Shown here: one piece after another, positions 1 through 64,000 of the stretch
Layout of the letters: each line of letters starts with the position of its first letter
Position numbering within the stretch: position 1 is the stretch's first letter
NCBI GenBank assembly: GCA_051530055.1
Contig: CM121341.1
Span: forward strand, 7,604,784 to 7,668,783
Direction of reading: 5' to 3'
Source: Neoechinorhynchus agilis
Lineage: Eukaryota; Animalia; Acanthocephala
DNA length: 64,000 bases
The notes under the pieces: generated by a model
What the model saw: only the letters and a program-made list of their open reading frames with translations
The model's database searches: none
Told to the model about the DNA's origin: nothing
Position numbers and translations under genes: made by a program

Positions 1-2529
1 GTTTGGATTCGTGAAATCGGATGAACTTTATATCGAATAGAAATCGTTTTGATCCGCTTTAAATGGCTAATAGCTATTTATCTCATGACCAAATTGCTTG
101 TATGTGCGCTTGTCTAATTCTGGTCGATGAAGATTTAAAGATCACGGCGGTCGTATTTCTTCGGTCTTCATCAGTGAAAATGTGAATGTTGAGCCGTTTT
201 GTTGAACTACAAGACGGTTGTTCTTAAAGTCTTTAGATATCTTTCCTCCCAAGAGTGAACGGCGGTAGTGGTAAATGGCTAAAATCGATGAAATTTATGA
301 AAAAAAAGGCCAAGGTCAGCCATTCAACGGTTTTTTGCTTACCATTTTAGACACATTTGTGTTGATGAAAGCCTTCATTCGAAAGTGTTATCACTTCGAC
401 GTACTTACTAGATCAGGAGCTATTTTGATTTTTACACTTGCTGATTTATTCTTGAAGTCTCAGGCCGTGTTGAGTGTAGAAAATTGTGCTTTTCAACACA
501 AATTGGAGCTGTCCCTCCTACTGGTCACCTTATTTGCTCCTTAGAGATGTTTTGCCTTTTATCTTTCAACAGTACTCTAAGAAGCCTCATTCCTTGTTGG
601 ATGGGTGGCTGATGGAAACCTTCCTGGATATCTCTTCCATCCCCAGGTTCAGAGTTTTGTTTGACACGACTTCTTGGTAGCTTTAATCGATGCATCAGTA
701 ACGCATCTTTGTCCTGGTAGCAGTTCAATCCGTCAATGACAAGATCTGCCGCGAGTGCGCTAATTTCTTCGGTACTGCCTCCTGCGCACAATAGGCTTAA
801 GCTCTCAATCGATTTTAATAGAAGAATAGCTTAGTCAATTGACCGAATATCTTCCTCTGCTGGGTAAACTTGTAGATTCGCGAGATTTGAATACGCCTGC
901 TAGGAAAAATATTCCGTTGATTTATCAAAGTGAACTCTACTTGTTTATTTCGGATTCACTGGGTTGGAGGATTTTACAAAAAATAATAAATTGCATAACA
1001 TAAAATGAATCGTCCAATTTTTTAGAGGTATAGTCGAAAAACCTATCTTTAATAGGCCAGATTTAGGAAAAAAATAGTATGATTGAGATCTACTTCGTGG
1101 TTAAAAGATTCCCTTTTTACTTTATCCTTAAGGACTAGATTTTTTCAAGTTTGAAGAGCTCTTTAACTCTGTAGAGAACAGATCGCCTTACAACATCGAA
1201 TGTTTTATTGATTTCTATTTTTGAAACAATTTTGTTTGTTCGATATATTAAATCTTGGTGTCATTTTCCTTATCTTTAATTTCTGTTTAAACGCGATCTT
1301 CTGTTTCTCTTGGACTCAGGAAATCTTGTATATTCTTTGCTCTTTTCCTGTTAAGTTAACTTGTCTCAATCTGAATGAATACAATCGTAAGAAGTCGAGG
1401 TTTGGACGCGAGTTCCCAACTATTGTTTCCGTTCAATTGTTTTTGAACTGTGTTTGTTGTAAAATCGTAATGACAATCAAACTCCGTGGTTCAATGTAGT
1501 ACATTTTTGAGAACAACACGTTTTATTGCTCCCTCAAATAAGCAAAATCGACTTTCATTTGAAATAGTTTAACTGTTTCTCTTTTCAAGCATAAATTTCC
1601 GATTCGCATTGTCCGTAATATGGTCATCTTAATAGCGATTGTCAAATTCAGCAACTCGCCATGCTCTAATGTCATTCACCGACGCCATTTCTCAGTTTCG
1701 TGTATAAGATGGAGCAAAGTTATTCAGTCTTTAAACCTACGAATAGTTTTTATGCTCCCGATGCAGAGTTTACTTTCCGGAGTCATCCGTCATTGGGCCT
1801 TTTCACCCGCATGTGGCCTTTTCCTGAAGCCCACTTAAATTTAAAACTTTACCATTTCGCCATTCCAAATCACCATTTTCCACCAACCAAAGGCAGGTAT
1901 TTTGGCCCAAGTACACAAAATATCACCCAGAGATTTTGACGATCGAACTTTTGTAGGTTTTACCTCGTTTTAAACTGACGATGATGTTCACTAATCGTGA
2001 GTACACGGTCACTAGATTTATTGCCACCAATGAATGAACTCGCTCAAGAATTCGGCTTTATTTTTTCGGGCAGCCTTCCTTTGATATTTTACTAGCGAAA
2101 CACTTGGATTTATGCGCTTTGCTTCTCATAGTGGATCGATGAACTGCGTGAATAACAATTAATTCCAATGAGAAACGCTTTATAGCACAAATTTATGTAT
2201 TTTTTATATTTCTAAATCAAAAGAACGTGCAAACAATAATGCTTTCGTTTATTTTATAATTCAATTAAACAAGTTTTCCATAAGCCAATCAACCACTACT
2301 ATTGGACACTTTCAATATCGAGAGGATACATAAAGTGACAGTTTAATTCATCTAAATTGAAGATTAAGAAGTATCTACATTTACGGTCTAATTACATGAA
2401 GTATTTATGGCTCAAAAAGTTTTGTTATTTCAAGACAGTGATAACCAAACAATCATATGGAACATGTTTATATGTTCGGATGAAATATAAATGTTTGAGA
2501 TATGGGAATTTGAAGTAAGAATTAATTTA

Positions 2530-20040: not shown

Positions 20041-20513
20041 AACTCCAAAATCTTTATTCCGAGTTAAAAGTACAATTTCACCGGTTCTTCCGCGTGTTTA
20101 ATCGATTACACAAACAATGCTTTGTCTTTGATTATTTTGATCCGGGAAAAAGCGACTTTTTTCCTTTAGTATTGCAAACTTGGATGTAAGAAATCATTGA
20201 TTTATTTCGTTCCGATATTTCGCGTTCAGATTTTCCCAAGGTTTTCAGAATTCCAATGAGGATCGCTTAAAACTTTTTTGGCGACATTTGTGTGCAGAGT
20301 TTTCTTTCCGTGGCCTCCTTTCAATTTCGAATACAGGATTATTTGTGACGTAATTGTTGTTTTTAATTCAAATAAGCGGCATAAACACGAAAGAATTTCT
20401 TGTAAATAAAAAAGTTATTGGTTTTCGACTTGGCGTAACCGTTGTCCTGTTACCGATACTCTTAATTTTTCACTGTTTGGTTCAGATTTGAAAAATTGTT
20501 TGTTGTTTTTCAG

Positions 20514-29500: not shown

Positions 29501-32500
29501 GAACATTCAAGCTGAGATTATGGAAAGTGTTCGTATTCAGGAAACAAATCGTCGTCGTGCAGAACAGGTTCAAATGGAAGATGTTGCTAACAACAACGAC
29601 CCGGCGGAGTTTTTACGTGTTCTTAATCCTACACTTCGACAGCAAATCTTTCTTGAACTTGACGACACTGAACTAAGCGCACTTCCGGATGATTTGGCTC
29701 AGGAGGCGAGTGCTCTTAGATTTGCCACTCACAGAACTCGCGCGTTTCGTGGTGTAGCTCGACGAAATCTCCTCCGGAATCTTCGTAACCGCGGTGCCGG
29801 TATAATATTGAGCCGGGATGAGTTTGATAATCTTGATATGCTTCAATGGGCAGCAGATGAGATAATGGAGGATAGAGAAGGACACGGTGGTGCTACATTA
29901 TCGGTAGACATTGTTCCCCGGATATTTAGAGGATCACGGTTAGCTCGACGAGGAGGTCGTCCTCTTACAATGAGGGACCAAAGACGGCTTCAGGTGCTTC
30001 AGACTGCTTCGGATGAAAGTAATGCGTCGTATGAGATGATGGATCTCGAAGTGACCAATGAGTTAACTACGATTCTACTGGTGAATTTATTCTTTGACGA
30101 TAATCGTCAAAACATCAATCGGGTTCAACGAATTGTTCGCAATTTGGCAAAGGGACACACTGTTGTCACTGATTTGATCGCAAGCTTGTGCTTGGTGATG
30201 ATGAAGTGTACGGGAAGGATTGAGTGCGTTCTTGGGGATGAAGACGAAGACGAAGATGCGGAGTTGGTTCTCGTTGAACCTCAATGGCTTCGATTGACTC
30301 GTACAGGCCCATTTGGAATACGCGTTCCTTCTCTTTCGTTCTATAAACGTCTAAATAAGAACCCTACCGACTATCCAACTCATGTCTGTCTCGATGAACA
30401 CGCGAGCAAAGATGTATGCAGACGAACACTTGATATGATCTCGTTTATATCTAATTTCACCTTTGAACGATTCATCAATAATCATCTAGATCCCCTATTG
30501 ATCCAATCTGGTGATTTATTTTGGCGAGGCTTGATTCAAGCTGAAATGAGGTTCGTCTACGGTTCTTCTAGTCCGCTCATTCCACAATTATTCAAACAAC
30601 CAACAGAAGGGTGTGAAGACATCGATTGTAGCATCTTTGCAACTCTTGTTCTTATGGTTGAACATCCTATCTTAAGAAAAGACATTTCACTTTTAGAATC
30701 GTTTTTTGTCCTTCTAGCCAATCTCAGTTACCATCTCGAAAAGTATGAAGTGTTTTGCGTGGATCCACCCGAGTCACCCATACAACGCAAGCAACTAAGA
30801 CTCAAAAATCGAAGACGTGATCAGACTTTGTCTACTGATACTCGACCACTTTTTGAAGGAATCGCAATGGAAAAACAGATTGACGCTCTCATACGGTTTT
30901 TGGTGAATGCGAACGATCCCATTGATGACGGACCGATTCCTATTAAGATGCTGAACGTTGATAATATCACTGATGTCCTTACAAACATTTCCCAAATCAA
31001 CAAAGCGACACATTCGCGAATCATGGATCGGGCTCTGAACGGTTTGCGCAATATCGGACGACAGTTAGAAGAAGAAATTCGGTTTTTGTACCAGGAATCG
31101 GCTGTCTATGAGATGTTGGAAGCAAATAAACTAATTGGTGGAGACGGTGGTGGTGGTGCCGATTCTGACACCGAAGATGAAACTCCACGAAATAGCGGAG
31201 CTAAAAAGATGCATGTGCCAGCAATGCAACCGTTTATTAAAAAGCAATCAACTCAAGGGTTCTTTCTTCAGGTTCTTAAGGTTGTTCTTGAATTAAGACG
31301 ACTTAAACCAAAGACACGGCAGACCAATCGTTCAGGTGTGGAGTCTCGTGATAATGATGCTGCTGCTGCTACATTAGAACCGACTTCTGGCGAAGAGCAA
31401 ATGCAGTCAGCTCCACAAGTATCCGCCGAACCTCCCTCCTCTGAAGTAATCGAAGAAACGCCAAAGTTTTTAAGCACTCAACTCGATCTCGGTGATCTAT
31501 GGACGGCTTTGGATGTCTGTTTAACTGAACTTCAGAATCTAAATGACTCACAGACTTTGTTGCTTCTTCAGCCGAGTGTAGAAGCGTTCTTCTTAGTTCA
31601 CTCACCTCCATCGGCATCTCAGAATTCGAATCGAAGACGTAGAGTGAATGCACGGACCGAACGGGAACAACGCGCACTTAATCTTGCCCATCTCATCGAA
31701 ATCAGCACTAATGAACCCGTCTCCACTGAACCTCAACAACAACAACAAGCATTGCAACCAAGTTCAGAGGTTCTAGGAAGACAAGCGAGCTCCAGTTCTG
31801 GAATGGATTACTCGTATACGGAAATGGCTATTCGAGAGCATAGCAGACCAACAGCCGATGAGACCGTTCGTAACAAAAACCTATTTCTTTCATTTGCCAA
31901 CTCTCATTCCAAAATGCTCAACCATATTCTTAGACAAAGTCAGAGTTCTCTTCTCGAAGGACCGTTCTCTGTCCTATGTGACTATACTCACATCTTGGAC
32001 TTTGATGTAAAGCGCAAATACTTCCAAGAGGAACTCATTAATTTGAAATCCATGAATTTGAGAGAAGAAGTGAACGTGACTGTGAGACGGGATCATTTGT
32101 TCGAAGATTCATACCGTGAACTTAATCGCAGGTCTGTCGATGAATGGAAACGTCGGTTCTATGTTACTTTTGAACAAGAAGAAGGACAAGATGCCGGTGG
32201 ACTTCTTCGAGAATGGTACAGTGTGATTTCAAAGGAGATCTTTAACCCCAATTACGCTCTCTTTATGGTAAATCCATCCGACCGTGTCACATACATGCCC
32301 AATCCCGCTTCACACGCTAATCCTAGTCATCTCAGTTACTTTAAATTTGTCGGACGAGTGATTGGAAAAGCGATTTTTGACTCAAAACATCTTGACTGTT
32401 ATTTCACACGGTTCTTTTATAAACACATTCTCGGTGTTCCAGTCGATTACTCCGATATGGAGAGCGTTGATCACGATTTTTATAAGAACCTTTGCCTGAT

Positions 32501-33140
32501 TCTTGAGACGGATGCCAGTGCGTACGAACTCAATTTCTCAACGGATGTACAAGAGTTTGGAGTTACCAAGACTATTGATCTCAAAGAAAACGGACGTAAC
32601 ATTCCGGTCACTAACGAAAATAAGCACGAATACGTTAGGCTTTTGTGCCATGAGAAAATGATCGGTTCTATAAGACCTCAGTTGCTCTCGTTCCTTGACG
32701 GATTCTACTCAATCATTCCAAAACGTCTTATTAGCATATTCGACGAGCACGAACTCGAGTTACTCATAAGTGGATTGCCTGACATTGACGTTGAAGATCT
32801 TAGAGCCAATACGGAGTATCACAAGTACAGATCGAATTCTATGCAAATTCAGTGGTTGTGGAGAGCTCTTAGGTCATTCGAGAAAGATGATCTTGCCAAG
32901 TTTGTGCAGTTTGTAACGGGCACAAGCAAGGTTCCATTGGGTGGATTCGCGTTTCTAGAAGGAATGAATGGTCCTCAAAAAATGCAAATACATAGAGATG
33001 AACGAAGCTCCAATCGGCTGCCTTGTGCACATACTTGCTTCAATCAGCTCGATCTTCCGGTCTATGAAACTTACGATAAACTTAGACAATGCTTACTGAC
33101 TGCCATACACGAGTGTCAGTTTGGCTTCGGACTCGCTTGA
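20514..33140 (+). CDS. HUWE1: HECT E3 ubiquitin ligase HUWE1, 4208 aa, no coding introns
   Basis: N-terminal MKVDRTK, ARM-repeat region (QPSLR, FQEP), WWE-like segment (GVWKVYEDRYNRW), long acidic tract, UBM repeats (FLLELPHDLRLEV, FLTELPRNIQAE), HECT domain ending LPCAHTCFNQLDLP...GFGLA. tttttcag acceptor directly precedes the ATG. Confidence 0.97.
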   Translation: MKVDRTKIRKLQADVSKESRQLIEKIRNASSGPDGPLSAQLLEMLGGIKHWPVGKCELLHWVDVLDILDEVLAENARRVFHWSLNCDVGEKDKLRDLLLAVLNFTALLVEHSYSRHLYSSVEHLITLLGSSDLQICLSVLNLLYVFSKRSTFIQKLPPHLKSPLVGALLALAQGYGGRQNHLDLASCCKIVPSEDFATQSSIEAAESLYYEIPREVKTNPVDSSTIKISFENVKESVQDSQINTPGQLMDEIVSHYKLESLLVPPNSQQQTISGGKSGQQVLYELFNRLRLAFYFGERQTRIQCVEARLQALSILIYSNLGGEHVHSLLYPGIIREFSDCLILENYEDLIDIKAGVLKCLTSVIHLERHINHTEIVESMQISSYHGFLPDLVRMCVRQLTDLSENVSYKLPHSFITALFSFLYHLASYDGGSEALISSGTVKALLDVVGHHDNSDANVMFVTRAVRVLDLITNVEMTNFQQASGVTIFIDRLNYETKQCRISQPFEIRLKNASSSRGSATPDSTSAEVGDSEEPTLIIEYIKPTRTCYHQRGALMKSILNFIKRSIGDHTMADTVRHMMEGSLPDSLKHILSNCEYYGPSLFLLTAEIVSLHIFQEPSQMSYLQEIGLCDVLLYALLKLEIPPTREVLASLPGFLSSLCLNQAGLTAFLRYKPFDRLFKVLLTPSYLPAMRRRRPNASTDHLTASPNVNSQSTAYVLGQAMDELIRHQPSLRQSAMQAIVGLLEELIQIGTNTNENNPDGIVDAIEGDVPIYEYITNITRFIEAVLTSNSSTEHLAEFMLIRGPEQLLQIPFLSNIPLAQTGLGSAQTVAGLLKLVIQNYRDDTLIRALIVSMDAVLSDFDRIFYADQFDCYIYQTVNSSSNVPFSRVHRNLAIMNTFCQLILLISKSPTGEARSLVYGVLSDQIGLDLIRQLCRVYVRLVDEEFILASSCLCHPEPVNIDETIKTNFNPSPIVRFMLLNSEPADHQPLRRCYLPPRSLQYVFPILYHVSKTLRTLTEFFGMVNKISAAAGAALVPPTAPPNQRNPRNITFSNGAPNTVLQVMNDNLIVKSFEMVQNEKLRVFRVAHFVTLVSYLLMDERRRFLHLSLHYFSIGGAESAFFKCLNYLSTRITEQNDILVPLPTNLVQTPAIPLTSFLCQPPTQTIPDELISEKDVFGLCLSLLTSLLDFTNIRKSQFTVPKDVKPPVRPFNDVVFTLRIESGTNSLVNRLWNRYLTANDNLNQESSSPAAAATVKLCDQILQIIAALATDREHFNSTIERSRDLDNHEECVAALQSLGIGVLMGDKDTGDLISEHFYKLASGSSCGGGGDPESTIIMVNHPKTPQPETAVSHLQVFLMNKAVDGQFKYLVEHMTTGLLRLFQPSSYSLGKIREIVYLVGVQSRNSCWINQFIKELCGRIIDDHPAMSVYLVLLSVLLQERPGHTASVISETELPQKCSYFVEIVNSVEQVKLLGSILLFLDLYMVGIRDAQRTFHLRQVLENTYGVWKVYEDRYNRWMSQSIVNNAMLTQDFIQGRVRSTVATMTRRSANVYFTAFLHISEDTRRTKPFELWMIPMRDKVFSAENTPNETADDLNVIPPPIHLTYGLDVRSITRVPFFLKPFMATSSQRCDPFHIKRPPDEPSEAQSERFLLQLIRILQTHSCLDSDVVHASMRLILRLTQSQSLCRIFVQHKGIEALFAIPASHAFLGIMSLTIMIIKHVLDTEQNLAYSMEKIIRYLMNTQNGRNPPISNSSSNIIASNHREIYSLMRTLTPVMCRNPQVFIETLMKTVKIADATDTNIQTIAEGCGSMIVTLRRSDQQFHMKLCDQTIGIVNLLLTYLGTTRSDGVITRAAVLRIMSELVRNYSLLAPLIMNHQNAEGERTFSLIIDRYVDIGSSDEELAPYARILVVNIASATTSPAGQRQLIQELQRSIRQCINQIELTKGSQSSLTRFQSIAVLLSLVVHSCTGGNQRYGTLSTPIMTFLKCLKESGLLRDLVMVFTKFQLNPAGESVMSTIQSINRAVDSLTKPFYYAHQQTYTGAIDAADPLSENQREPEQQRNTDETDEGVHGSVEPGAVEEARAPTPTAYVRIEQDEAGTARLEIDVESQAMSDENDDDEDEEEEEDGSSGDEEEEDEVSEEDGDGDGDHHDDEDEEDDTESSEDARARTNVARYSDCDEEHDEDDVVHSGGQPAEAVIVLGGGGNRDNEHEEEEEEDDDEEYSVDSDVEMQDALDHEIDEEVAMETEEDEQQSNVGATHDQDEPDVERHEIPVDEEILNEALRILAESDEDYDGNDIEIDDEGFIVGGADVNAGGDGDDDVVMDDEEEDGDEDDDEDDDEDHEPDDDDEHHVHIQFDLSARQRDHHWIINEDQAQPSMPPNIYADLYSSLSESGTTMSSWIHSAIHAACLASLTTENTSGQMLAQMHSIVANSPLVNAAGLATAGCATSGGIIPYGSNLVNTLINASSSSPAPTQTSVIASAAANAAAAAITYSSSLPMVHGLLLRRPSEFSSQSTTTNRPPSQRSTSQRNLTPNDAFYTASRAAATAASTSMGTQRYGPQVFTTGLQSAMATARFDDVFGFGGIQRLSRFPGARESIYNPTGHRNSSVEEAAFVAGALSARNPVSAILSDLGILSGNQRNPAQMAQQIQASDSVVVPPPPPPPPPQQPAQGSNVFGHSQLSLPTHATTSAAAAADILLAPMVRWIEECLIVDGVLFHPSTTLQRQQVILRLYSEVQSTFRERLNEYWNPNRTSGVDSQRPPTDDTGTYYDQEMEVQTDTPSLLTTAAHDANFTDTETMDVDEDLTLEPSTQRAPSTEPSVEPERGVEVVVEEEEMDVDHPQEAVSNVTTEEPESTVAPLEAVATTEQSASEPLLSDETVQETTEPTTQPETADNAEDAPVEYVDLTIEGRDYRVPSWVDHTFLLELPHDLRLEVIQQQNRIAREREQRRAAALVGRAEPAEEADNADDTPLPEVNEDVLAEMGISVEFLTELPRNIQAEIMESVRIQETNRRRAEQVQMEDVANNNDPAEFLRVLNPTLRQQIFLELDDTELSALPDDLAQEASALRFATHRTRAFRGVARRNLLRNLRNRGAGIILSRDEFDNLDMLQWAADEIMEDREGHGGATLSVDIVPRIFRGSRLARRGGRPLTMRDQRRLQVLQTASDESNASYEMMDLEVTNELTTILLVNLFFDDNRQNINRVQRIVRNLAKGHTVVTDLIASLCLVMMKCTGRIECVLGDEDEDEDAELVLVEPQWLRLTRTGPFGIRVPSLSFYKRLNKNPTDYPTHVCLDEHASKDVCRRTLDMISFISNFTFERFINNHLDPLLIQSGDLFWRGLIQAEMRFVYGSSSPLIPQLFKQPTEGCEDIDCSIFATLVLMVEHPILRKDISLLESFFVLLANLSYHLEKYEVFCVDPPESPIQRKQLRLKNRRRDQTLSTDTRPLFEGIAMEKQIDALIRFLVNANDPIDDGPIPIKMLNVDNITDVLTNISQINKATHSRIMDRALNGLRNIGRQLEEEIRFLYQESAVYEMLEANKLIGGDGGGGADSDTEDETPRNSGAKKMHVPAMQPFIKKQSTQGFFLQVLKVVLELRRLKPKTRQTNRSGVESRDNDAAAATLEPTSGEEQMQSAPQVSAEPPSSEVIEETPKFLSTQLDLGDLWTALDVCLTELQNLNDSQTLLLLQPSVEAFFLVHSPPSASQNSNRRRRVNARTEREQRALNLAHLIEISTNEPVSTEPQQQQQALQPSSEVLGRQASSSSGMDYSYTEMAIREHSRPTADETVRNKNLFLSFANSHSKMLNHILRQSQSSLLEGPFSVLCDYTHILDFDVKRKYFQEELINLKSMNLREEVNVTVRRDHLFEDSYRELNRRSVDEWKRRFYVTFEQEEGQDAGGLLREWYSVISKEIFNPNYALFMVNPSDRVTYMPNPASHANPSHLSYFKFVGRVIGKAIFDSKHLDCYFTRFFYKHILGVPVDYSDMESVDHDFYKNLCLILETDASAYELNFSTDVQEFGVTKTIDLKENGRNIPVTNENKHEYVRLLCHEKMIGSIRPQLLSFLDGFYSIIPKRLISIFDEHELELLISGLPDIDVEDLRANTEYHKYRSNSMQIQWLWRALRSFEKDDLAKFVQFVTGTSKVPLGGFAFLEGMNGPQKMQIHRDERSSNRLPCAHTCFNQLDLPVYETYDKLRQCLLTAIHECQFGFGLA

Positions 33141-44723: not shown

Positions 44724-45464
44724 CGAAGCGTATCGAATCATCCACACAAATCCTTTTCTTCAAAGAATCATTAGGATTCTTCCAGATATAAGAAGAAAAA
44801 TATTCAATAGAGGACAATTTTAGGGTAAACAATGAAGCTCGTGAATAGTTTAACATTATTTACGAATTCTCAATGGCGAATTGTTACACACTCGAACTTT
44901 ATTATTGAACTCTTCATTGCGAATTTTCAAGGCCTTAGAGCCTCCTTCTCAAGCATTGTTTTCGGAGGAAAAAACTTGTAAACAATGCTTTGAAAATTCG
45001 CAATGAAACGTCGTAAACACTTGCAAACAAAGTCCCCCCCCGAAGAAGCCGTTAAACGGTGAAAGCTTAGGTAAAAAAACAATAAATCGGTCCTCGTTGT
45101 TTGTCAAGGGAAAACTGAATATAATAATAAAACTCGAGTGTGTTACAGTTCGCCATTGAGAATTATTTACGAAATAAACATTTCGGAAGTTTAAACCAAC
45201 TTTTGTTTTTGTCTTGAATTTTGTTTTGCTATCCCGTCCCGGATTTAAGTTCATTAAATCAGCAATAAATCATCGGGGAACTTAAATCTGAAGCGCGAAC
45301 GGCAAAACAATAGTATCTTTTCCACCGTCAAAATTCAACTTTTGTTTTGAATTTTGTTTTGCCATCCCTTCAAAAATAATAATCCAAGAAACTTTCTTTT
45401 TGTCGTGAATTTTAGTGACTTTATCCATGCAAAATTAAAACGCTATTTAAAAGACTTTTGTCTC

Positions 45465-53046: not shown

Positions 53047-55290
53047 GATTAAAAACGACTCTCTCGTCCGCTCGGTTCTCGAAACTGGTGACTCGGATAA
53101 CGTTGCCGTTTTCTATCCTAAAGATTTTAATCTCGCTACTTCATTTTTTCATAACTTTTCGGTCTTCATTGAGCGTTCGATCTTTTATTTTTTAGATTAA
53201 AGACGACTCTCTCGTCCGCTCGGTTCTCGAAACTGGTGACTCGGATAACGTTGCCGTTTTCTATCCAAAAGATTTTAATCTCGCTACTTCATTTTATGAT
53301 CATTTTGTGGCCTTCATTGAGCGCTCGATCTCCTTTTTTTGAGATCAAAGATGACTTTCTCGTCCGCTCGGTTCTCGAAACTGGTGACTCGGATAACGTT
53401 GCCGTTTTCTATCTTAAAGATTTTAATCTCGCTACTTCATTTTTTCATAACTTTTCGGCCTTCATTGAGCGTTCGATCTCCTATTTTTGAGATTAAAGAC
53501 GGCTTTCTCGTCCGCTCGGTTCTCGAAACTGGTGACTCGGATAACGTTGCCGTTTTCTATCTTAACGATTTTAATCTCGCTACTTCATTTTTTCATAACT
53601 TTTCGGCCTTCATTGAGCGTTCGATCTCCTATTTTTGAGATTAAAGACGGCTTTCTCGTCCGCTCGGTTCTCGAAACTGATGACTCGGATAACGTTGCCG
53701 TTTAATATCTTAACGATTTTAATCTCGCTACTTCATTTTTTCATAACTTTTCGGCCTTCATTGAGCGTTCGATCTCCTATTTTTGAGATTAAAGACGGCT
53801 TTCTCGTCCGCTCGGTTCTCGAAACTGGTGACTCGGATAACGTTGCCGTTTTCTATCTTAACGATTTTAATCTCGCTACTTCATTTTTTCATAACTTTTC
53901 GGTCTTCATTGAGCGTTCGATCTTTTATTTTTTAGATTAAAGACGACTCTCTCGTCCGCTCGGTTCTCGAAACTGGTGACTCGGATAACGTTGCCGTTTT
54001 CTATCCAAAAGATTTTAATCTCGCTACTTCATTTTTTCATAACTTTTCGGCCTTCATTGAGCGTTCGATCTCCTATTTTTGAGATTAAAGACGACTTTCT
54101 CGTCCGCTCGGTTCTCGAAACTGGTGACTCGGATAACGTTGCCGTTTTCTATCCTAAAGATTTTAATCTCGCTACTTCATTTTTTCATAACTTTTCGGCC
54201 TTCATTGAGCGTTCGATCTCCTATTTTTGAGATTAAAGACGGCTTTCTCGTCCGCTCGGTTCTCAAAACTGGTGACTCGGATAACGTTGCCGTTTAATAT
54301 CTTAACGATTTTAATCTCGCCACTTCATTTTTTCATAACTTTTCGGCTTCTTGAGGTTCGATCTTTACTTGTCCTCGGTTCTCGAAACTGGTGACTCGGA
54401 TAACGTTGCCGTTTTCTATCCAAAAGATTTTAATCTCGCTACTTCATTTTTTCATAACTTTTCGGCCTTCATTGAGCGTTCGATCTCCTATTTTTGAGAT
54501 TAAAGACGACTTTCTCGTCCGCTCGGTTCTCGAAACTGGTGACTCGGATAACGTTGCCGTTTTCTATCCTAAAGATTTTAATCTCGCTACTTCATTTTTT
54601 CATAACTTTTCGGCCTTCATTGAGCGTTCGATCTCCTATTTTTGAGATTAAAGACGGCTTTCTCGTCCGCTCGGTTCTCGAAACTGGTGACTCGGATAAC
54701 GTTGCCGTTTTCTATCCTAAAGATTTTAATCTCGCTACTTCATTTTTTCATAACTTTTCGGCCTTCATTGAGCGTTCGATCTCCTATTTTTGAGATTAAA
54801 GACGGCTTTCTCGTCCGCTCGGTTCTCGAAACTGGTGACTCGGATAACGTCGCCATTTTCTATTTTGGTGCAAAAGACGATTTTAATCTCGCTACTTCAT
54901 TTTTTCATAACTTTTCGGTCTTCATTGAGCGTTCGATCTTTTATTTTTTAGATTAAAGACGACTCTCTCGTCCGCTCGGTTCTCGAAACTGATGACTCGG
55001 ATAACGTTGCCGTTTAATATCTTAACGATTTTAATCTCGCTACTTTATTTTTTCATAACTTTAAGGCATTCATTGAGCGTTCGATCTCCTTTTTTTTGGA
55101 TTAATGATAACTCTCAGGCCCGCTCTTTTCTCGAAACTGATGACTCGAATAACGTTGCCGTTTTCTATCCTAAAGATTTTAATCTCGCTACTTCATTTTT
55201 TCATAACTTTAAGGCATTGATTGAGCGTTCGATCTCTTTTTTTCAGATTAATGATTACTCCCAGACCCGCTCGATTCTCGATCTTTTGTG
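53047..55290. repeat. Satellite, 148-bp unit, about 15 copies, whose last unit overlaps the KIF23 start
   Basis: gattaaagac...ctcgtccgctcggttctcgaaactggtgactcggataacg repeated from 53047; the last two units diverge (gattaATGat...). Confidence 0.95.
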
Positions 55291-57476
55291 GACTAAGGCC
55301 ACTTCCGAATGGAGAGACTCAATCGTGTTGCACGGTTATTTCTCCGGTCTGTGTGGCACTGCATGCGCCCAACGATGTCACAGGAAAGAAGCGGCCGAAA
55401 AAGGAAATCCTTGGTTCATTTCGGAACGTCTATAAACCCGAAGACTCACAGTCTCATCGATTCAAAGACCTTTGTATTCCACTGGTTGTAGGCTTTCTTC
55501 AAGGATCCAGCTCTCTTTTATTTGCTTATGGTGTAAGCGGATCCGGAAAGACGTACACAATGGTCGGCGCTGAAAGCGATCCGGGTATTATCCCAAGATG
55601 CCTTGATGTGATATTTAATAGCATCGGCGATCGATTGAACGAGCCGTACACTATCGTCTTTAACTCACATTCAGGAGAATTCATTCGACTGACAGACGCT
55701 GAACGTATGTTGGAGCGACAAAGGAGAGAGATTTTGCCATCCATCATGAATTCCGCTAAGACTCAGCCATCAACTACAGGTCAAGGTAACAGGATCCGTG
55801 ATCCGAGCCGGTTTTTTTGTGCCGGTGGAATGGAGCAGAGTCGCTTCACCCTAATTGTTTCCTATGTCGAGGTATACAACAAAAACATTCATGATCTTCT
55901 GGACGATTCGGCGTGGAGTCATCGATTGGAAGGACAATTTAAAAAGGCTTTGAGACGAGACACTCAGGGGGATGTGTTTGTAGGTGAATGCACTCACGTC
56001 GAAGTTCGATCTTCCGATGATGCCTACGAAGTGTTTATGAAAGGAAATCAGCGACGAAAACTGTCCGAGACGATGGCCAATAGTGGTTCCACTCGTGGAC
56101 ATGGAGTTTTCACGGTCCACCTCGTCCGGCTCGATGATCCCGCCTATAACCATGCAGATAAAACGACGGTCGCTATCATCAGTAAGCTTTGTCTTGTGGA
56201 TCTTGCAGGATGTGAACGTCAATGCAAAGCCAAAACTACAGGACATCGATTACAAGAAGCTGGACACATAAATACGAGCTTACTTGTTCTTAGAAAATGT
56301 ATTGAAGTCATGCGGACAAATCAGAAGCAATGCGATCAAAAGCTCGTGGTTCCATACAGGGACTCGAAACTCACAATGCTTCTAAAGTACTTCTTCGAAG
56401 GACACGGACGTACTTTTATGCTTCTTTGCATGAATCCGTCCTGTCGCGATTACGAAGAAAATGTTAGAGCTCTACAATTCGCAGAAATCACTCAGGATCT
56501 TGAGAATGTGACTGCTTCGGGCGCAACAATTGCCAAGCATGTAAATATCAAGACAAAAGATGATCCGAAGATCAATGGTGAAATGGCACCTACATCAAGC
56601 GAAGATACATACTCGGTAAGTCAAATGGGAAATTCCATAATCAAACGAATGGACCAGAACCTGAGGGCGTATACAAAAATTATAGATAAACTCCAATTAA
56701 TTGAGTCTGAATGGAAGGCGATGTCTAAGAAAGTGGATGTATTTAGTAGAAGATTGAAAGAAAAGGAGAAAGTGGAAGCTCAACTAGCAACGGAGAATCA
56801 TGTCTTGCTCAATGAGAACAGAAATCTTAAAACTAGAATTGATGAATTGCTTGTTGATTTGGACGTTCATAAGCGAAAACAGGAGTTTGTAAGTCACGAA
56901 GATGTCACTCGAATGTGCAATGCAAATGATACAACAGCAACCACTACTACATACAGAACAGAATACATTGTGACTCCTTGGAACTTAGAAACCATTACAC
57001 ACACTCCAAAATCAATATCTCGAATACGTGGACTACATTACAGGCATCGCAGATCAAGTTCAGGCCATGAAACTTGGATAAATCATAAGCCACGAGACAT
57101 ACAAATAAAAGACCAGATCCTGCAGCCGAGGTTTAATCGACGATCAAAATCATACGATGTTTGTTCATCTCGAATGCTGGACGACCTCACTGGTCCTCAT
57201 GCAGCCAATCGATATGCATTGATACATCAAGAAAAAAGTGGACGAGGAGATTTGAAAACCGAAGTTCTGAAGGCCGACGTGTATCCGACCACTACAGGCG
57301 GTGCTAAAGTAGTCTTCAAGGAAGTAGAAAGTGTTCAAAGCAGCCAAAGTCTGTCGCGAAAGCGTGCTCTTTTCGATTCGGACAAGGAAACGGAGTCCGG
57401 TGATCATGTGTTGAGCACTATCACAAATGACCCGAGGATTACAAAGATTACGAGATATGACCACAATTTCAAATAA
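55251..57476 (+). CDS. KIF23: Kinesin-6, KIF23/MKLP1 (pavarotti) type, 741 aa, intronless
   Basis: LLFAYGVSGSGKTYTM, SYVEVYN..IHDLL, DLAGCER, VPYRDSKLT, coiled coil, C-terminal HRRSSS...WINHKP...YALIHQE...KADVYPT.TGG..V.F.EVE (MKLP1 Arf6-binding tail). Confidence 0.92.
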   Translation: MITPRPARFSIFCGLRPLPNGETQSCCTVISPVCVALHAPNDVTGKKRPKKEILGSFRNVYKPEDSQSHRFKDLCIPLVVGFLQGSSSLLFAYGVSGSGKTYTMVGAESDPGIIPRCLDVIFNSIGDRLNEPYTIVFNSHSGEFIRLTDAERMLERQRREILPSIMNSAKTQPSTTGQGNRIRDPSRFFCAGGMEQSRFTLIVSYVEVYNKNIHDLLDDSAWSHRLEGQFKKALRRDTQGDVFVGECTHVEVRSSDDAYEVFMKGNQRRKLSETMANSGSTRGHGVFTVHLVRLDDPAYNHADKTTVAIISKLCLVDLAGCERQCKAKTTGHRLQEAGHINTSLLVLRKCIEVMRTNQKQCDQKLVVPYRDSKLTMLLKYFFEGHGRTFMLLCMNPSCRDYEENVRALQFAEITQDLENVTASGATIAKHVNIKTKDDPKINGEMAPTSSEDTYSVSQMGNSIIKRMDQNLRAYTKIIDKLQLIESEWKAMSKKVDVFSRRLKEKEKVEAQLATENHVLLNENRNLKTRIDELLVDLDVHKRKQEFVSHEDVTRMCNANDTTATTTTYRTEYIVTPWNLETITHTPKSISRIRGLHYRHRRSSSGHETWINHKPRDIQIKDQILQPRFNRRSKSYDVCSSRMLDDLTGPHAANRYALIHQEKSGRGDLKTEVLKADVYPTTTGGAKVVFKEVESVQSSQSLSRKRALFDSDKETESGDHVLSTITNDPRITKITRYDHNFK

Positions 57477-57835
57477 ACCAACTTTGGAACTTTATTTCAA
57501 GTCGAATAAAATAAATATCAAAACTGTTCTCATTGATTTGTCAGTCGATTCTAATCTTCTATTTTTTCCGGAGAAAATAAATCATCTATTTTCTTAAAAA
57601 AGGTTCATTCACATCACCGCTCCTCTGGATCTCTCATGATGCCGTCCTGATGTAACGGTCGAAAGGACGGATGCAGCGTTCCCTCGTTGCAGGGACAGAC
57701 CTATGTTTTGTAGGAGAAATGCTCCTGATCTCGGATCGCCAATGATTCGTCTCGATCTCTTAGACAATTCCTAGACCAGGCCCTGCGCGCCGTGGAAAAA
57801 CGATTAAAAATTCCAGCAACCCAACGATGTCACTT

Positions 57836-58951
57836 AAGTGTTTTTGTAGAACATTCCTTAATCGGCTCTTTTCCTTTTTAGGCACACAGCCAAACCGATC
57901 TCTTATAGATCAGGGACATGATTGAATCACTTAGATTCTCTCAAAAATATACGATTATGAGTTTGTAGAGAGTCCGGATAGTTTCCTCTATTCAGCGAGG
58001 TATTTCGTCCCCTTTTTTGAACTTCTCGACCCACTTAAACAGGGATTCGAGGGCTACACAACTACGGATTTTATGAACTCTGCCAGTTTTATGCTTTGGG
58101 GCCGGTTTTATTAAGTGTTTTTGTAGAACATTCCTTAATCGGCTCTTTTCCTTTTTAGGCACACAGCCAAACCGATCTCTTATAGATCAGGGACATGATT
58201 GAATCACTTAGATTCTCTCAAAAATATACGATTATGAGTTTGTAGGAGTCCGGATAGTTTCCTCTATTCAGCGAGGTATTTCGTCCCCTTTTTTGAACTT
58301 CTCGACCCACTTAAACAGGGATTCGAGGGCTACACAACTACGGATTTTATGAACTCTGCCAGTTTTATGCTTTGGGGCCGGTTTTATTAAGTGTTTTTGT
58401 AGAACATTCCTTAATCGGCTCTTTTCCTTTTTAGGCACACAGCCAAACCGATCTCTTATAGATCAGGGACATGATTGAATCACTTAGATTCTCTCAAAAA
58501 TATACGATTATGAGTTTGTAGAGAGTCCGGATAGTTTCCTCTATTCAGCGAGGTATTTCGTCCCCTTTTTTGAACTTCTCGACCCACTTAAACAGGGATT
58601 CGAGGGCTACACAACTACGGATTTTATGAACTCTGCCAGTTTTATGCTTTGGGGCCGGTTTTATTAAGTGTTTTTGTAGAACATTCCTTAATCGGCTCTT
58701 TTCCTTTTTAGCCACACAGCCAAACCGATCTAAGTCATGAATAACTTTGATTCCCGGATAGTTTCCTCTATTCAGCGAGGTATTTCGTCCCCTTTTTTGA
58801 ACTTCTCGACCCACTTAAACAGGGATTCGAGGGCTACACAACTACGGATTTTATGAACTCTGCCAGTTTTATGCTTTGGGGCCGGTTTTATTAAGTGTTT
58901 TTGTAGAACATTCCTTAATCGGCTCTTTTCCTTTTTAGGCACACAGCCAAA
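57836..58951. repeat. Tandem array, 277-bp unit, about 4.4 copies
   Basis: aagtgtttttgtagaac at 57836, 58113, 58389, 58666, 58893 (last spacing 227). Confidence 0.95.
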
Positions 58952-59113: not shown

Positions 59114-59323
59114 GGAAATATTTTGTGATATCGAGATTGATTTATTTTGCCTTTTTTCACAATATTTCATCTCTATCTTCGGACTCTTCGGGTGAACTAA
59201 ATGAAATTTTTGCGTTTGACATTTCGGTCTCACTAACAGATAAACCGAAAAAAACTTCATTCTAATCCTATTTGAAAAAATCAATCGTATCAAAAAATAG
59301 ATCAAATGGCTCAAACCGGTTTA

Positions 59324-62300
59324 TTAACTATCTTTTTCACAGTTAAATCCTTGAATTTTCGGACTTACAAGTTCAATTTTAAGAAACTGGCGACATGAAG
59401 TTGTATTTTCATCAACCGATAACTTAACTTCAACCTTATCAAATTGCCTTAACGATATTGAAGGACACGCTTTCACCGTATGGCACTTATTGTTATCGTC
59501 GTACTCGAACCACACATCGGCGTTCACTTTTGTCTCAATATTATTTGGGGAGATAATCTTCTTCGACAAATAGAGCATAGCTTCGAGGCCAAATCGTGGT
59601 ACAAACACTTTCAAAGCATTTTGAAAAACGGCAAAAATAAAAGCGTCTTCTTGGACAACATTCTTTTTGAAGAAAAACAAAGCGTGAAGGTTTACACAAG
59701 CAGTTTTCAACCTTTTTTTGTGTGCTCACGACTTTCAAAATACCTTAATCTACTTTTAAAATTCAGTATTGACCTTTGGAGAGACTAAAAAGGTTGAAAA
59801 TCACTGGTTTACACTATCCCTGGACGCATATTGAGCCTGTCTATGTCGTTCATTAAGAGCAACGCATTGTCTACCAACATTCTCGGGATCAAGCATAGCT
59901 GCACTTGAATCTTCTAAATGAAGAGAAGCTGCAAGCAGTCGATGGACCATTATATCGGCATATCGACGGATTGGTGAAGTGAAATGCGTGTATATATCAC
60001 TCGCAAGTCCGTAGTGTTTAAAGTCTGATGGTCTTGTACAACCACCGATTCCTGACCATCCACTACAAAAGTAAACGGCTTGCCTCATACACCGCGTGGC
60101 CAACATCCGAACCATGACATTGAAATATGGATTATCTGAGAGCTCGGCATCGTTTAACGACTCGGCTAAAGCTTTCCCGGATTCAGTCCGAAGATGAACT
60201 CCTTTAGAACGTGCTGCGTTTATCAACGGTTCGAAATCATGTTGTCTGGGCTCTGGGTGACGGCGAAGTACGGCGCATTGTGAGAAGTGATTGTAAGTGT
60301 GATTGGCAACCGTGATATTGGCTAATAACATAAACTCTTCTACCATTTGATTGGTTTCTTGGACGGTCTTTTTCATCACATCTAGAGGATTACTGGACTC
60401 AGTGTCCAATAGAAACCGAACTTCAGGCGATTCCAACACAAGCGCACCATTGTCCATACGCTGCTTTCTATTGGTCGTCTAATCGTGTTTTTAAAGAAAC
60501 CCAAAATCATTTGATAAAAATGAGAGTCCTGATCAAATAATTCTTCTTCTTTAAGTGCTAAGCTTTTTTTTAAAGTTACAAAAAAGGATTTATGCCACCG
60601 CCTTTCTGGATCACTCAGCTGCCGACAAAAGACAGAAAATAATTAAACCATAATAATTTTGGTTCAAGATTGAGTTAATTTTACATTCGGTGATGCGGTG
60701 CCGAATAAGAAATGTTGCCAAGGGTGGAGATTACAATAACCACATCTCCATAAGGATTTTCTCTTGATTAACTAAATTATAAAAAAGAGCGGAACCGTAG
60801 GAATTGTTAAAAAAACCCATATTTCTCAACCATTACAAAAAACCGACTGGCGACAACGCAAGTATTTTTGCAATATGATTTAAATTCCGAAGAGATTGAG
60901 CAACCGGACCATCATTTGCGTTATTATTCATAATTAATTGCGCTTGTCCGTACTCAAGTGCCGCTTCATTTCTCATTACGGTTTTTAGGAACTTAGTCTT
61001 GATTACTTCGGCGTTCGGCGTCATTTCCCAAATGACCGAAAACGCAAGTCGATCTTCCTTTTCTCTCAACGAACACACGTTCGTGCTCAATATTGGAGGC
61101 AGCATATCGATTCGTCGATCAGTCAAATAGACAGAAGTGCATCGATACTTAGCTTCAGTATCAACGGCCGTTCCTGGACGGACGTAGTGGCTAACGTCCG
61201 CTATATGTACACCACATTCCAAATTGCCATTGTCCAGTTGACAACAATGCAATGCATCATCAATATCGGTGCATCCTTCTGGATCGATGCTTAAAATAAA
61301 CCTTTTACCTCGTAAATCCGTCCGTTTTAAGACTTCATCGTCGTTCAAAAGAGTATGAGCATCACTAACTGAAGCGATCACATCATCCGAGAATGGATAA
61401 TCCGGAATCCTGTGTTGCATGAGAATAATCTGCTTCCATGTGGAGTTGTCTGACTTGGCTCCAATCGAACGGCAGTAGTGACCCGAGGGATATCTCGACT
61501 TTCGGTCCCATTGATCAATCGCAACTACAATAATTAAAGACTTTAATCGATCGGCTTGTCGGGTTTCAATTCGAATTTTAGGAATATGTCGATCAGATGG
61601 GATAAACAAGCTGTGATAAAACTCATTGCTCGAATTTTCTTGAAGAACGCCACAGAACTCCGTGTGTTTTCTTCGAATCACACCAACAATTCTACCCGAT
61701 TTTATCCGATTTACGCTAATCTCAGGAGCATTAATGGCGTCGAAATCGTCTTCGTTCGCAGTATCATCCACTGCAATACTCAAAGGAGATGCCCACTCAC
61801 TTTCGGGTAAGATTTCAACCGCAACCGTATCGTCATGAATAGCTCTATTGATATTCAATGATCCCGGAATAAAAATCTTATCGAGTTCACGAGATGCTTC
61901 TTCGGGCAATGTATCTTCATTTTCGCTCGGATACACATTACCTTCGTGAAGATTATCCGGATTGGCGTAAAACGTACCTACAATAACACTACCATTTTGC
62001 ATTCCTTCTTTAATCTGCTCGAGACTTAAATGAACCGGATAAATAAAATCTCGATTGACAAGTCCAGCGCTCGGTTTCATTTCTGAATCCACGATACCAG
62101 TGATGCCCAGACTCGCAGGCCAAAACGTATGACAAAAATTTTGAGTATGAATTAAGTTAAATTAGTTCATTTTATAAGAATTGAAAAGACAATAATTGGC
62201 CTGCTCATAATCCGAGATATTTATGAGATGTCGGCAGTTGTTCTTTGGGCTAATGAGTTTCGGAATGTTTGGCTCTAAAGTTGTCAAATTGATAATGTGA

Positions 62301-64000
62301 CCGGTCATTTTCAGTAATTCATTTCGCAAAATTTGAAAGCTTAAAACTCTAATAAAGATTTTTCAACAACAAAATTTGTTCGTCACATTTAAGTGCGAAT
62401 AAAACACTTTAACAATTGCCCAGTTGAAGCCGGAAAACGGCGAAAGCTAGGAAAAAACTCTAGGTCGTATTTATCAAATTAAAATTAAGACATGCGAATG
62501 GAAAATCGAGCAGCGATTCACGCTATTTTGTGAATAAAGGAATAAAAGTGCGGACCACATGCAATACCTTCCCGTGGGCCGGAAGGTCCTCATGGTTTTG
62601 TGGGGGCTGTTAGGAACTTTACGATACAGAAATTAAAACTTTGCAAGGAAACTGAACCTTTTTTAAATGGATTTTCTTCAAAAATACCTTTATCCAGAGG
62701 ACGATACTAAACTTGTTATTTTGTGTATAGATTTCGAATTTACAGTCCTCGTCATTTTTTAGTTATTATAAAAATTTGAGCTAGAAATAGAAATTAATGC
62801 TTTGCAAGGAAACTGAACCTTTATTAAATGGATTTTCTTCAAAAATACCTTTATCCAGAGGACGATACTAAACTTGTTATTTTGTGTATAGATTTCGAAT
62901 TTACAGTCCTCGTCATTTTTTAGTTATTAAAAAATTTGCGCTTGAGAAATAGAAATTAATGCTTTGCAAGGAAACTGAACCTTTTTTGGATGGATTTTCT
63001 TCAAAAATACCTTTATCCAGAGGACGATACTAAACTTGTTATTTTGTGTATAGATTTCGAATTTACAGTCCTCGTCATTTTTTAGTTATTAAAAAATTTG
63101 CGCTTGAGAAATAGAAATTAATACTTTGCAAAGAAACTGAACCTTTTTTGGATGGATTTTCTTCTAAAAATACCTTAATCCAGAGGACGATACTAAACTT
63201 ATTATTTTGTGTATAGATTTCGAATTTACAGTCCTCGTCATTTTTTAGTTATTAAAAAATTTGCGCTTGAGAAATAGAAATTACAGCTTTGCAAGGAAAC
63301 TGAACCTTTTTTGGATGGATTTTCTTCTAAAAATACCTTTATCCAGAGGACGATACTAAACTTGTTATTTTGTGTATAGATTTCGAGTGATTTTTTAGTT
63401 ATTAAAAAAATTTGCGCTAGAAAATTTGAGACTTTCCGGGGAAGCTGAACCTTTTTTGGATGGATGTTTTAAAATCAAATCCAAATGACGTCCCTTTTTC
63501 CTGTTGGGCACCACTGGACTATTCTAAGACAATCTTCGAGTTCGGCAATGCCGAATCCTTTAACGTACTCTTCCATTGTGAATGTGGGATATCCTTTGGA
63601 TCTGGACGATTCCCGTCTTTTTTCATTGTCGCTTATTACAAGAACGTTAACGTGAACACCGTACTCGTTTTGAAGAAGATGGAGCTTATAAAACTTGACA
63701 ACGGCTAATAAAGCTCTAAAATTTCGGTCTTCGGCACTTTCGCCCATCATTTTCCTTACAAACGTATGACGGCTGTATTCGTTGAGAAAAAGAAAAAATC
63801 GTTTCCGATTGTTGTTGAGGAGAACTCGGAACTTCCGATAGACACTCAGTGATTTTTGTCGGACTTCTTCGAGGACACTAATCGGTACAATCATATCGAC
63901 AATGGCATCGTTTGCGAATATATCCGATTGAGCAACGATTGTATCTGCGTCGCAGATAAGGTAATGGGCGTCCGGGAATGCTTCGTTTGGAGGTTGAACA
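59324..64000 (-). CDS. DIS3: Exosome catalytic subunit DIS3/RRP44 (5' end beyond the window), 3 introns in the window
   Basis: PIN (HYLICD...VLEEVR...NEY...GESAEDRN), CSD (NINRAIHDDTVAVE, IPKIRIETRQ, WDRKSRYPSGH), RNB (SIDPEGCTDIDDALH, GVHIADVSH, VEEFMLLAN, YTHFTSPIRRYAD), S1 domain to the stop at 59324. Predicted introns 62112-63514, 60468-60857, 59712-59804. Confidence 0.95.
59698..59806. mobile_element. 109-bp hAT-type MITE inserted in DIS3 coding sequence
   Basis: Perfect 8-bp direct repeat GTTTACAC (59690-59697 and 59807-59814); perfect 14-bp inner inverted repeat ttttcaaccttttt/aaaaaggttgaaaa; one end reads CAGTGA on the DIS3 strand. Confidence 0.82.
62098..63516. mobile_element. 1.42-kb non-autonomous hAT-type element forming a DIS3 intron
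   Basis: TIRs CAGTGATGCCCA (62098-62109) / TGGGCACCACTG (63505-63516), 11/12 matching; flanks cacgatac / gactattc (5/8, degenerate 8-bp TSD); internal cccgtgggccgg motif and tandem array. Confidence 0.8.
62640..63465. repeat. Tandem array, ~162-bp unit, 5 copies plus a partial, inside the hAT-type element
   Basis: tttgcaa(g/a)gaaactgaacc at 62640, 62801, 62963, 63125, 63288. Confidence 0.95.

Follow-up and report, generated by a model that had tools for sequence, protein, structure and literature searches.

The larvacean tunicate Fritillaria borealis carries non-canonical introns derived from MITEs (Henriet et al. 2019, as cited in PMC11282704; Soo et al. 2026, PMC13326754)—these have terminal inverted repeats (TIRs) and target-site duplications (TSDs), and are spliced by a U2-type spliceosome (PMC13326754, PMC11282704). 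Just 5% of introns in this species are GT/AG, with AG/AC and AG/AT forming the main classes (PMC13326754, PMC11282704), and a YAY triplet stands before the 5' splice site and again as the last three intron bases (PMC13326754). The spliceosome involved is of the U2 type with divergent U2AF paralogues. The introners of Micromonas and Aureococcus, as summarised in PMC11282704 (Huff et al. 2016; Gozashti et al. 2022), follow a related route; a DNA transposon with TIRs and a TSD becomes an intron made up of the element and a single copy of the duplication, which restores the coding sequence. Those introns are canonical GT-AG, with one splice site supplied by the element and the other made in the duplication, and they number in the hundreds to thousands, the copies being nearly identical.

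Two protist systems offer further comparisons. Euglenid nonconventional introns lack canonical borders; their ends pair, with CAG/CTG close to the termini, and their junctions show TSD-like repeats. They are apparently non-spliceosomal and yield circular products. Ciliate internal eliminated sequences (IESs) derive from transposons, interrupt coding DNA and are excised exactly, from the DNA itself. Among DNA transposons, members of the hAT superfamily bear a terminal YARNG motif at both ends, and hAT MITEs combine short inverted ends of this type with an 8-bp duplication and no coding capacity. To our knowledge, transcript-supported removal of transposon insertions at non-GT/AG borders has been published among animals only for Fritillaria-lineage larvacean tunicates.

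Here we describe a DIS3/RRP44 gene on the minus strand of a 64-kb window (the whole stretch of acanthocephalan DNA that was analysed). Three introns interrupt the known part of the gene, which runs on past the window end on the side of the PIN exon; the spliced coding sequence is 2742 nt long and open for 913 codons, its sole stop being the terminal one. We conclude that, very probably, all three introns are non-GT/AG and two of them represent DNA-transposon insertions, here called E1 and E2, that are removed post-transcriptionally together with one duplication copy each. A summary of the features discussed is given in Table 1.

Table 1. Features of the DIS3/RRP44 locus, in positions of the 64-kb window.
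Feature	Positions	Strand	Details
DIS3 exon (PIN domain)	63521..64000	-	human RRP44 residues 57-203, E 6e-29
DIS3 intron 1 as cut from RNA	62094..63520	-	1427 nt = E1 + 8 nt
Element E1, non-autonomous	62098..63516	-	1419 bp; pairing ends 63516-63505 and 62109-62098
162-bp tandem repeat, 4.7 copies	62628..63386	.	occupies most of E1
DIS3 exon (CSD domains and first part of RNB)	60860..62093	-	human RRP44 residues 227-622, E 5e-106; RNA contigs of 1236 nt
DIS3 intron 2	60470..60859	-	390 nt, non-canonical; RNA joint 60469->60860
DIS3 exon (remaining RNB)	59806..60469	-	human RRP44 residues 623-834, E 1e-67
Element E2, MITE-like	59698..59806	-	109 bp; inverted ends 59806-59787 and 59717-59698
DIS3 intron 3 as cut from RNA	59689..59805	-	117 nt = E2 + 8 nt
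Last DIS3 exon (S1 region)	59324..59688	-	human RRP44 residues 837-942; stop codon 59326-59324

Transcript evidence comes from three separate samples (runs X2, X5 and X10) and DNA reads from run X8; the run designs match PMC12690905, with poly-A RNA-seq of single worms, and DNA from a worm pool plus Hi-C. In all three RNA runs, contigs join 62093 to 63521 (1427 nt skipped), 60469 to 60860 (390 nt) and 59688 to 59806 (117 nt), and the spliced contigs across these joints have depths of 140-437. Contigs that end at 63521 resume at 62093 at a depth of 140-378; the short side of this E1 joint matches 28 nt only, with 2 nt of ambiguity, and the stretch between is flagged 'not known'. Run X2 carries another allele at 62092 with the identical junction. 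At the E2 joint the two sides measure 105-255 nt, with 9 nt of ambiguity. The lengths skipped at E1 and E2 equal the element plus exactly 8 nt—the mRNA at both junctions reads as the target site would if it had never been interrupted, and contains no extra amino acids.

RNA contigs that still carry intron sequence (60441-60889, 62066-62416 and others) reach a depth of just 3-10. The unspliced contig over intron 2 (60441-60889) stands at 8-9 versus 170-440 for the exons, and border-crossing contigs for introns 1 and 2 amount to 2-5% of exon depth. Across the three runs no RNA contig covers E2, and no unspliced E2 precursor was seen. In DNA run X8 both elements are present at flank-like depth, and none of its whole-worm reads carries a spliced joint at any of the three sites. 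Since the elements are unexcised in DNA and low-depth RNA crosses two of the intron borders, removal takes place on RNA; the absence of the joints from the DNA reads excludes both an identical intronless DNA copy, such as a retrocopy acting as the source of the RNA, and bulk excision at the DNA level. The same reads show that neither an assembly error nor a minority allele accounts for the elements, and the view that they act as transposon-derived introns holds—the gene that houses them is essential, and its mRNA lacks them.

Alignment with human RRP44 places two of the junctions within conserved domains, and both are gapless: intron 2 falls at 622|623, where one exon alignment stops exactly at AKIL (residue 622) and the next begins exactly at residue 623, and E2 falls at 835|836, the last exon being aligned to residues 837-942 from query residue 2, so that residue 1 corresponds to 836. 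The exon borders carry some register freedom. The PIN exon has its final base at 63521 with 2 nt of freedom, and the 3' end of the exon before E2 can lie anywhere in 59806-59815, depending on the register. The stretch of human DIS3 beside the junction at E1 is a linker with little conservation, in which added residues would be tolerable.

Element E1 begins with CAGTG and finishes with CACTG, and its 12-nt ends can pair fully as RNA, including one G.U pair. The end-to-end duplex reaches -35.7 kcal/mol versus -22.1 +/- 3.7 for shuffled sequences, a value equalled by none of 300 shuffles. No ORF of at least 60 aa was found in E1. The 8-mers that flank it, GAATAGTC (63524-63517) and GTATCGTG (62097-62090), are identical at only 5 of 8 positions; the chance of at least five matches is about 0.03 by a binomial sum. 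We considered whether this duplication had drifted only at third codon positions, an idea that fails, since each copy lies half within the intron and that half is not translated.

An 8-bp duplication, GTGTAAAC, stands on either side of element E2 (59814-59807 and 59697-59690); it is perfect, and E2 is for that reason taken to be young. The inverted ends of E2, 20 nt each, agree at 16 positions, including a perfect core of 14 nt, and form a duplex of -22.7 versus -12.4 +/- 3.3 for shuffles, about 0.7% of which are as good. The 5' end reads CAGTG; the 3' end is not CACTG but ...AACTGCTT (AAGCA in reverse complement), and sequence inspection reveals no polypyrimidine tract before it. The original prediction of 8-bp duplications is thus borne out at E2, and at E1 by 5 of 8 positions only. 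Describing the two elements as unrelated was fair, apart from a shared CAGTGAT.

We regard E1 and E2 as hAT-like, an assignment that rests on the 8-bp duplication and the YARNG-type end. The duplication is complete at E2 (8/8) and partial at E1 (5/8, with an intron of element plus 8 nt), and the YARNG-type CAGTG occupies both ends of E1 and the 5' end only of E2, whose 3' end departs from the motif. No transposase or family copies were found in the window: a Pfam search of ten long ORFs in it returned no hAT or BED domain, and the 64-kb window holds no further copies of the ends of either element. Rfam gave no credible match on 59300-64000. A window scan for 8-bp repeats next to inverted ends returned nothing beyond tandem-repeat artefacts and a single unrelated element of 299 bp, and missed E2 itself at the threshold used. 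DNA depth across E2 is about 17x, flank-like and hence single-copy, and this speaks against a young family of high copy number.

None of the registers that the junctions allow gives GT..AG or AT..AC, so that U12-type AT-AC termini are likewise absent from all three introns. Intron 1 has three registers (AG..AT, TA..TA and AT..GT), intron 2 has two (GC..AT or TG..AA), and the E2 intron has ten equivalent ones, from 59689-59805 up to 59698-59814. For intron 2 we also tried a GT at 60857 with an AG at 60468, which would again span 390 nt; the contigs read CTT|AGA, not CTTGC|AAAG, and this pair was rejected. End pairing in intron 2 is weak, with 16% of shuffles as good, and its junction repeat is of 1 nt only. 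This intron also contains a 30-nt high-copy piece at 60595-60624.

Compared with the systems described above, the locus most resembles Fritillaria borealis. In both cases transcripts confirm non-GT/AG ends with frequent AT or AC at the 3' side, inverted ends and target-site duplications mark the borders (at E1 and E2; intron 2 has a weak stem only), a short repeat at the exon end recurs at the intron end so that splicing restores the target, and the hosts are essential genes in a compact animal genome. Read as AG/AT, with TAT at its 3' end, E1 would fit one of the main classes. The two animals differ in phylum, tunicate versus acanthocephalan, and in the repeat, which is short and YAY-type in the former and an 8-bp hAT-like duplication here. 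YAY is missing on the 5' side of E1, where AAT stands upstream of AG..AT, and intron 2 ends in AAT; every E2 register lacks the triplet, the nearest being AAC (CA..AC) or AG..CC. Micromonas and Aureococcus introners share the logic of element plus one duplication copy, but not the non-canonical ends, and the near-identical copies that characterize them have no counterpart in the window. As for the term introner, it suits these TIR/TSD elements in that they behave as introns, whereas the common GT-AG geometry that had been part of the idea does not survive the transcript data.

That geometry was the core of the original prediction, in which E1 and E2 are ordinary GT-AG introns with a donor CA|GT in the inverted end, an acceptor AG placed 14 nt short of the far end, and in-frame footprints of eight amino acids (HLGITGIV and QLKTACVN). 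The sequence features it invoked are real—both elements begin with CAGTG inside DIS3, the AG lies 14 nt from the far end of each, and the computed splicing preserves the frame—and the linker beside the E1 junction could take extra residues. However, the dominant RNA contigs of the three samples join 63521|62093 and 59806|59688 instead of the predicted 63514/62112 and 59804/59712, the outcome that had been named in advance as refuting the model, and they lack the footprint sequences. The gapless human alignment at 835|836 makes an 8-aa insert at E2 unexpected as well. The contigs used are Logan contigs, which drop rare isoforms and may hide minor use of these GT..AG sites; as the account of how the introns leave the message, the model is extremely improbable, and the coincidence of CA|GT with an AG at 14 nt has no detectable function. 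Insertion polymorphism would explain the mRNA differently: the RNA-sampled worms would hold alleles without the insertions, or at any rate without the young E2, and the "spliced" form would simply be the uninterrupted gene. The mRNA is identical to an empty site, the perfect duplication indicates that E2 is young, no RNA contig runs over E2, and depth in the bin 59708-59861 equals exactly the exon share. Yet about 17 reads of the DNA run include no empty-site joint, which makes the empty allele rare, while this explanation needs it on all expressed copies in three worms. RNA contigs show 0 differences from the window flanks over about 1 kb, where the DNA run has SNPs, and E1 and intron 2 are seen in the same RNA samples through low-depth border-crossing contigs. 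We infer from the lack of empty-site reads in X8, together with the exact match between contig flanks and the window, that the RNA-sampled worms carry E2, and consider polymorphism very unlikely. Still less credible is precise somatic DNA excision, by which transcripts would derive from genes already repaired. Precise excision of a transposon or IES likewise removes the element with one duplication copy; however, none of the three sites yields a whole-worm DNA read with the excised junction, and RNA with intron-exon borders at 2-5% of exon depth is as expected of precursor RNA. Whereas ciliates cut their inserts from DNA, here the DNA retains them and the RNA loses them.

A more serious contender, though an improbable one, is removal at the RNA level without a spliceosome, guided by paired ends as has been proposed for euglenid nonconventional introns. 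No register is canonical, the terminal stems of E1 and E2 are strong, a polypyrimidine tract is missing before the 3' end of E2, and the CAG...CTG pair of E1 sits 4 nt inward of either cut, comparable to the euglenid pairing at +4..6 / -8..-6 (PMC11282704). Against this, intron 2 is removed despite having no significant end pairing, the offsets from stem to cut are unequal between E1 and E2, and the sole animal precedent needs a U2-type spliceosome for all of its intron classes.

We favor post-transcriptional removal of non-GT/AG introns, two of them transposon insertions, by a spliceosome that would have relaxed end recognition, as in Fritillaria borealis. Each element would leave the pre-mRNA and take exactly one of its two duplication copies with it, and the mRNA would thereby read like a never-interrupted DIS3. 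The inverted ends, by pairing, may bring the two cuts close to each other, and the short repeat found at both may stem from the duplicated target. It is conceivable, if rather doubtful, that a second animal lineage, the thorny-headed worms, has independently gained a means of clearing DNA-transposon insertions out of its mRNAs regardless of which dinucleotides they end in, with cuts set by the paired ends and the duplicated target rather than by GT/AG, and with the spliceosome perhaps dispensable.

What is new at this locus is the transcript evidence and a case of the 8-bp-duplication, hAT-like kind. A second, unrelated animal would permit a comparison of whether splicing was relaxed by the same route (U2AF duplication, snRNA modification) or by another, and could also be used to ask whether such removal evolves to protect compact genomes by neutralising transposon hits. 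Genome papers on this parasite group, as far as consulted, make no mention of introns at all. Gene finders based on GT-AG would be expected to split or truncate the genes that contain such non-canonical introns, and inferences of gene loss in the group could therefore be partly artefacts. The DIS3 locus provides an RNA-supported test case for such introns in this genome.

Most of the DIS3/RRP44 exoribonuclease is encoded on the minus strand at 59324-64000, where three intervening stretches split the gene into four open pieces matching human RRP44 (see table). All three stretches are introns with non-canonical ends, and two of them are transposon-derived, their removal restoring the target site—intron 1 holds a transposon-like element (E1), intron 3 a MITE-like element (E2), and intron 2 lies between them. 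Logan contigs of three RNA runs (different samples) and the raw reads of one whole-genome DNA run were placed on 59400-64000, and the same three joints, each making two distant positions adjacent in a transcript contig, were found in all three RNA runs, from high-depth contigs (140-437). The spliced coding sequence has 913 open codons and then a stop at 59324. The intron 2 and E2 joints correspond to human RRP44 622|623 and 835|836 in a gap-free alignment; the E1 joint sits in the PIN-CSD linker, which is too weakly conserved for the human alignment to be decisive.

Open pieces, elements and transcript joints of DIS3, with the terminal dinucleotides permitted at each joint
Feature	Positions	Length	Details
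DIS3 open piece 1			minus strand; matches human RRP44 residues 57-203
DIS3 open piece 2			minus strand; matches human RRP44 residues 227-622
DIS3 open piece 3			minus strand; matches human RRP44 residues 623-834
DIS3 open piece 4			minus strand; matches human RRP44 residues 837-942
E1	63516..62098 (minus-strand order)	1419 bp	5' end CAGTG, 3' end CACTG
E2	59806..59698 (minus-strand order)	109 bp	20-nt inverted ends, 16/20 matched, with 14-nt perfect core
E1 joint	62093->63521	1427 nt skipped	2 nt ambiguous; short side 28 nt; registers AG..AT, TA..TA, AT..GT
Intron 2 joint	60469->60860	390 nt skipped	1 nt ambiguous; registers GC..AT, TG..AA
E2 joint	59688->59806	117 nt skipped	9 nt ambiguous; ten registers, among them AG..CC, CA..AC, GT..GT, GT..TT

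The skipped lengths at E1 and E2 equal element plus 8 nt (1419 + 8 and 109 + 8): along with each element, precisely one of its two 8-bp duplication copies is removed. The original prediction had both elements spliced internally, from a CA|GT donor to an AG lying 14 nt before the far end; these sites exist and would keep the frame, but the RNA joints lie elsewhere. The mRNA reads ...RIVDSEM... and ...DSVNLHAL..., and the predicted 8-aa footprints HLGITGIV and QLKTACVN are absent from it in the RNA contigs. When terminal dinucleotides were enumerated for every register (each equally valid placement of a joint within its ambiguous nucleotides), neither GT..AG nor AT..AC occurred in any permitted register of the three introns. 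Directly after the E1 junction, a C>T change at 62092 (Val to Met) is fixed in RNA sample X2, which represents the other allele, and is present in 3/7 DNA reads; the junction is identical on both alleles. In coding exon 3, a 1-nt deletion at 60009 (10/33 DNA reads, no RNA contigs, local depth about doubled) may reflect either a null allele or a second copy that has diverged.

In the DNA run, depth over E1 and E2 resembles that of the flanks (~17x over E2) and none of the three joints occurs, a joint being listed only from at least 3 reads. Together these observations rule out bulk somatic DNA excision, an identical intronless retrocopy and an assembly error. Low-depth RNA contigs (3-10; 2-5% of exon depth) span exon-intron borders at 60441-60889 and 62066-62416, the pattern expected of precursor RNA, and similar contigs cover much of E1. 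No contig from the three RNA runs covers E2, and hence no precursor was seen for it; its apparent splicing could then reflect an empty allele in the RNA-sampled worms. We consider this very improbable and infer that E2 is present in those worms, because no empty-site reads are listed in the DNA run (same 3-read threshold) and because the RNA contigs show no difference from the window across ~1 kb of flank in which the DNA run has SNPs.

The predicted element anatomy is real apart from the imperfect duplication at E1 and the 3' end of E2, and the 8-bp duplications and CAGTG ends favour a hAT origin. The duplication flanking E2 is perfect (GTGTAAAC) and fits the nTnnnnAn pattern of hAT targets. 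Against membership, the 8-mers flanking E1 are only 5/8 identical, the 3' end of E2 differs from CACTG, and DNA depth is single-copy; no transposase was found in E1 or in the long ORFs examined, nor any other copy of E1 or E2 in the 64-kb window. We call both elements hAT-like rather than hAT members. Most of E1 is occupied by a 162-bp tandem repeat, and it has no ORF of at least 60 aa. In RNA, the outermost 12 nt of its two ends are fully paired (one pair being G.U), with an end-to-end duplex of -35.7 kcal/mol versus -22.1 +/- 3.7 for shuffles (0/300 as good).

Other repeats lie in and around the gene. Two ~30-nt pieces within DIS3 introns (60595-60624 and 62385-62415) are high-copy in DNA reads, hundreds of which match the piece alone and then diverge into unlike sequence; in the latter, foldback ("opposite strands") joints also occur at 62411-62422, and both resemble fragments of small, abundant palindromic repeats that sit within the introns. 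Just 3' of DIS3, 57834-58951 holds 277-bp and 227-bp tandem repeats with repeated short ORFs (MPKKEKSRLRNVLQKHL...). Further away, 44856-45173 contains a 299-bp element whose 14-nt inverted ends are perfect; it is enclosed by an 11-bp direct repeat, TTATTTACGAA, and adjoins a ThiF-family ORF. A minus-strand ORF with a GIY-YIG endonuclease domain (2607-3518) probably derives from a Penelope-like retroelement. Uninterrupted ORFs of 4214 aa (20496-33140) and 751 aa (55221-57476, an MKLP1-type kinesin) indicate that introns are few or absent in many genes here.

The general idea of introns arising from transposons is supported, in a non-canonical form resembling that of the tunicate Fritillaria borealis; the predicted GT-AG geometry and footprints are refuted. 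In F. borealis, GT/AG accounts for only 5% of introns, the main classes are AG/AC and AG/AT, with 3' AT and AC dominant, a short YAY repeat precedes the 5' site and recurs at the intron 3' end, and 3' AC introns are without a polypyrimidine tract (PMC13326754); introns bear TIRs and TSDs, and their proposed origin is from MITEs (PMC11282704). Target-restoring removal of such introns is common to both systems. E1 fits the AG/AT class, with 3' TAT; intron 2 ends in AAT; E2 permits CA..AC or AG..CC and, like F. borealis 3' AC introns, is without a polypyrimidine tract. The YAY rule is followed only in part by the three DIS3 introns. In the genomic sequence of CRNKL1, a 61-nt insert (16585-16645, minus) interrupts the gene between ...VWKAY and IEFE...; TAT precedes this insert and also ends it (registers include AA..AT and AG..TA), a repeat of the YAY type described for Fritillaria.

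A U2-type spliceosome is needed to remove all F. borealis intron classes, and relaxed end recognition by a spliceosome would be the most likely mechanism in DIS3; paired element ends would bring the cut sites together, aiding removal, and the target duplication would provide a repeat present at both cuts. Non-spliceosomal, structure-guided removal, as in euglenids, seems unlikely—E1 does place CAG...CTG 4 nt inside each cut, but intron 2 is removed despite having no significant end pairing. For E1, one might speculate that, had its insertion target been the GAATCGTG now read in the mRNA, all three mismatches between the two duplication copies would fall in the intronic halves, two of them creating the AG of the 5' cut and the TAT of the 3' cut.

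Non-canonical transposon-derived introns appear to be unpublished for Acanthocephala, since introns are unmentioned in the N. agilis genome paper, a rotiferan genome comparison and the Pomphorhynchus genome paper, and a literature search for non-canonical introns in the phylum found nothing. The DIS3 locus newly provides junctions read directly from transcripts, DNA reads that speak against excision, and an example with an 8-bp duplication.
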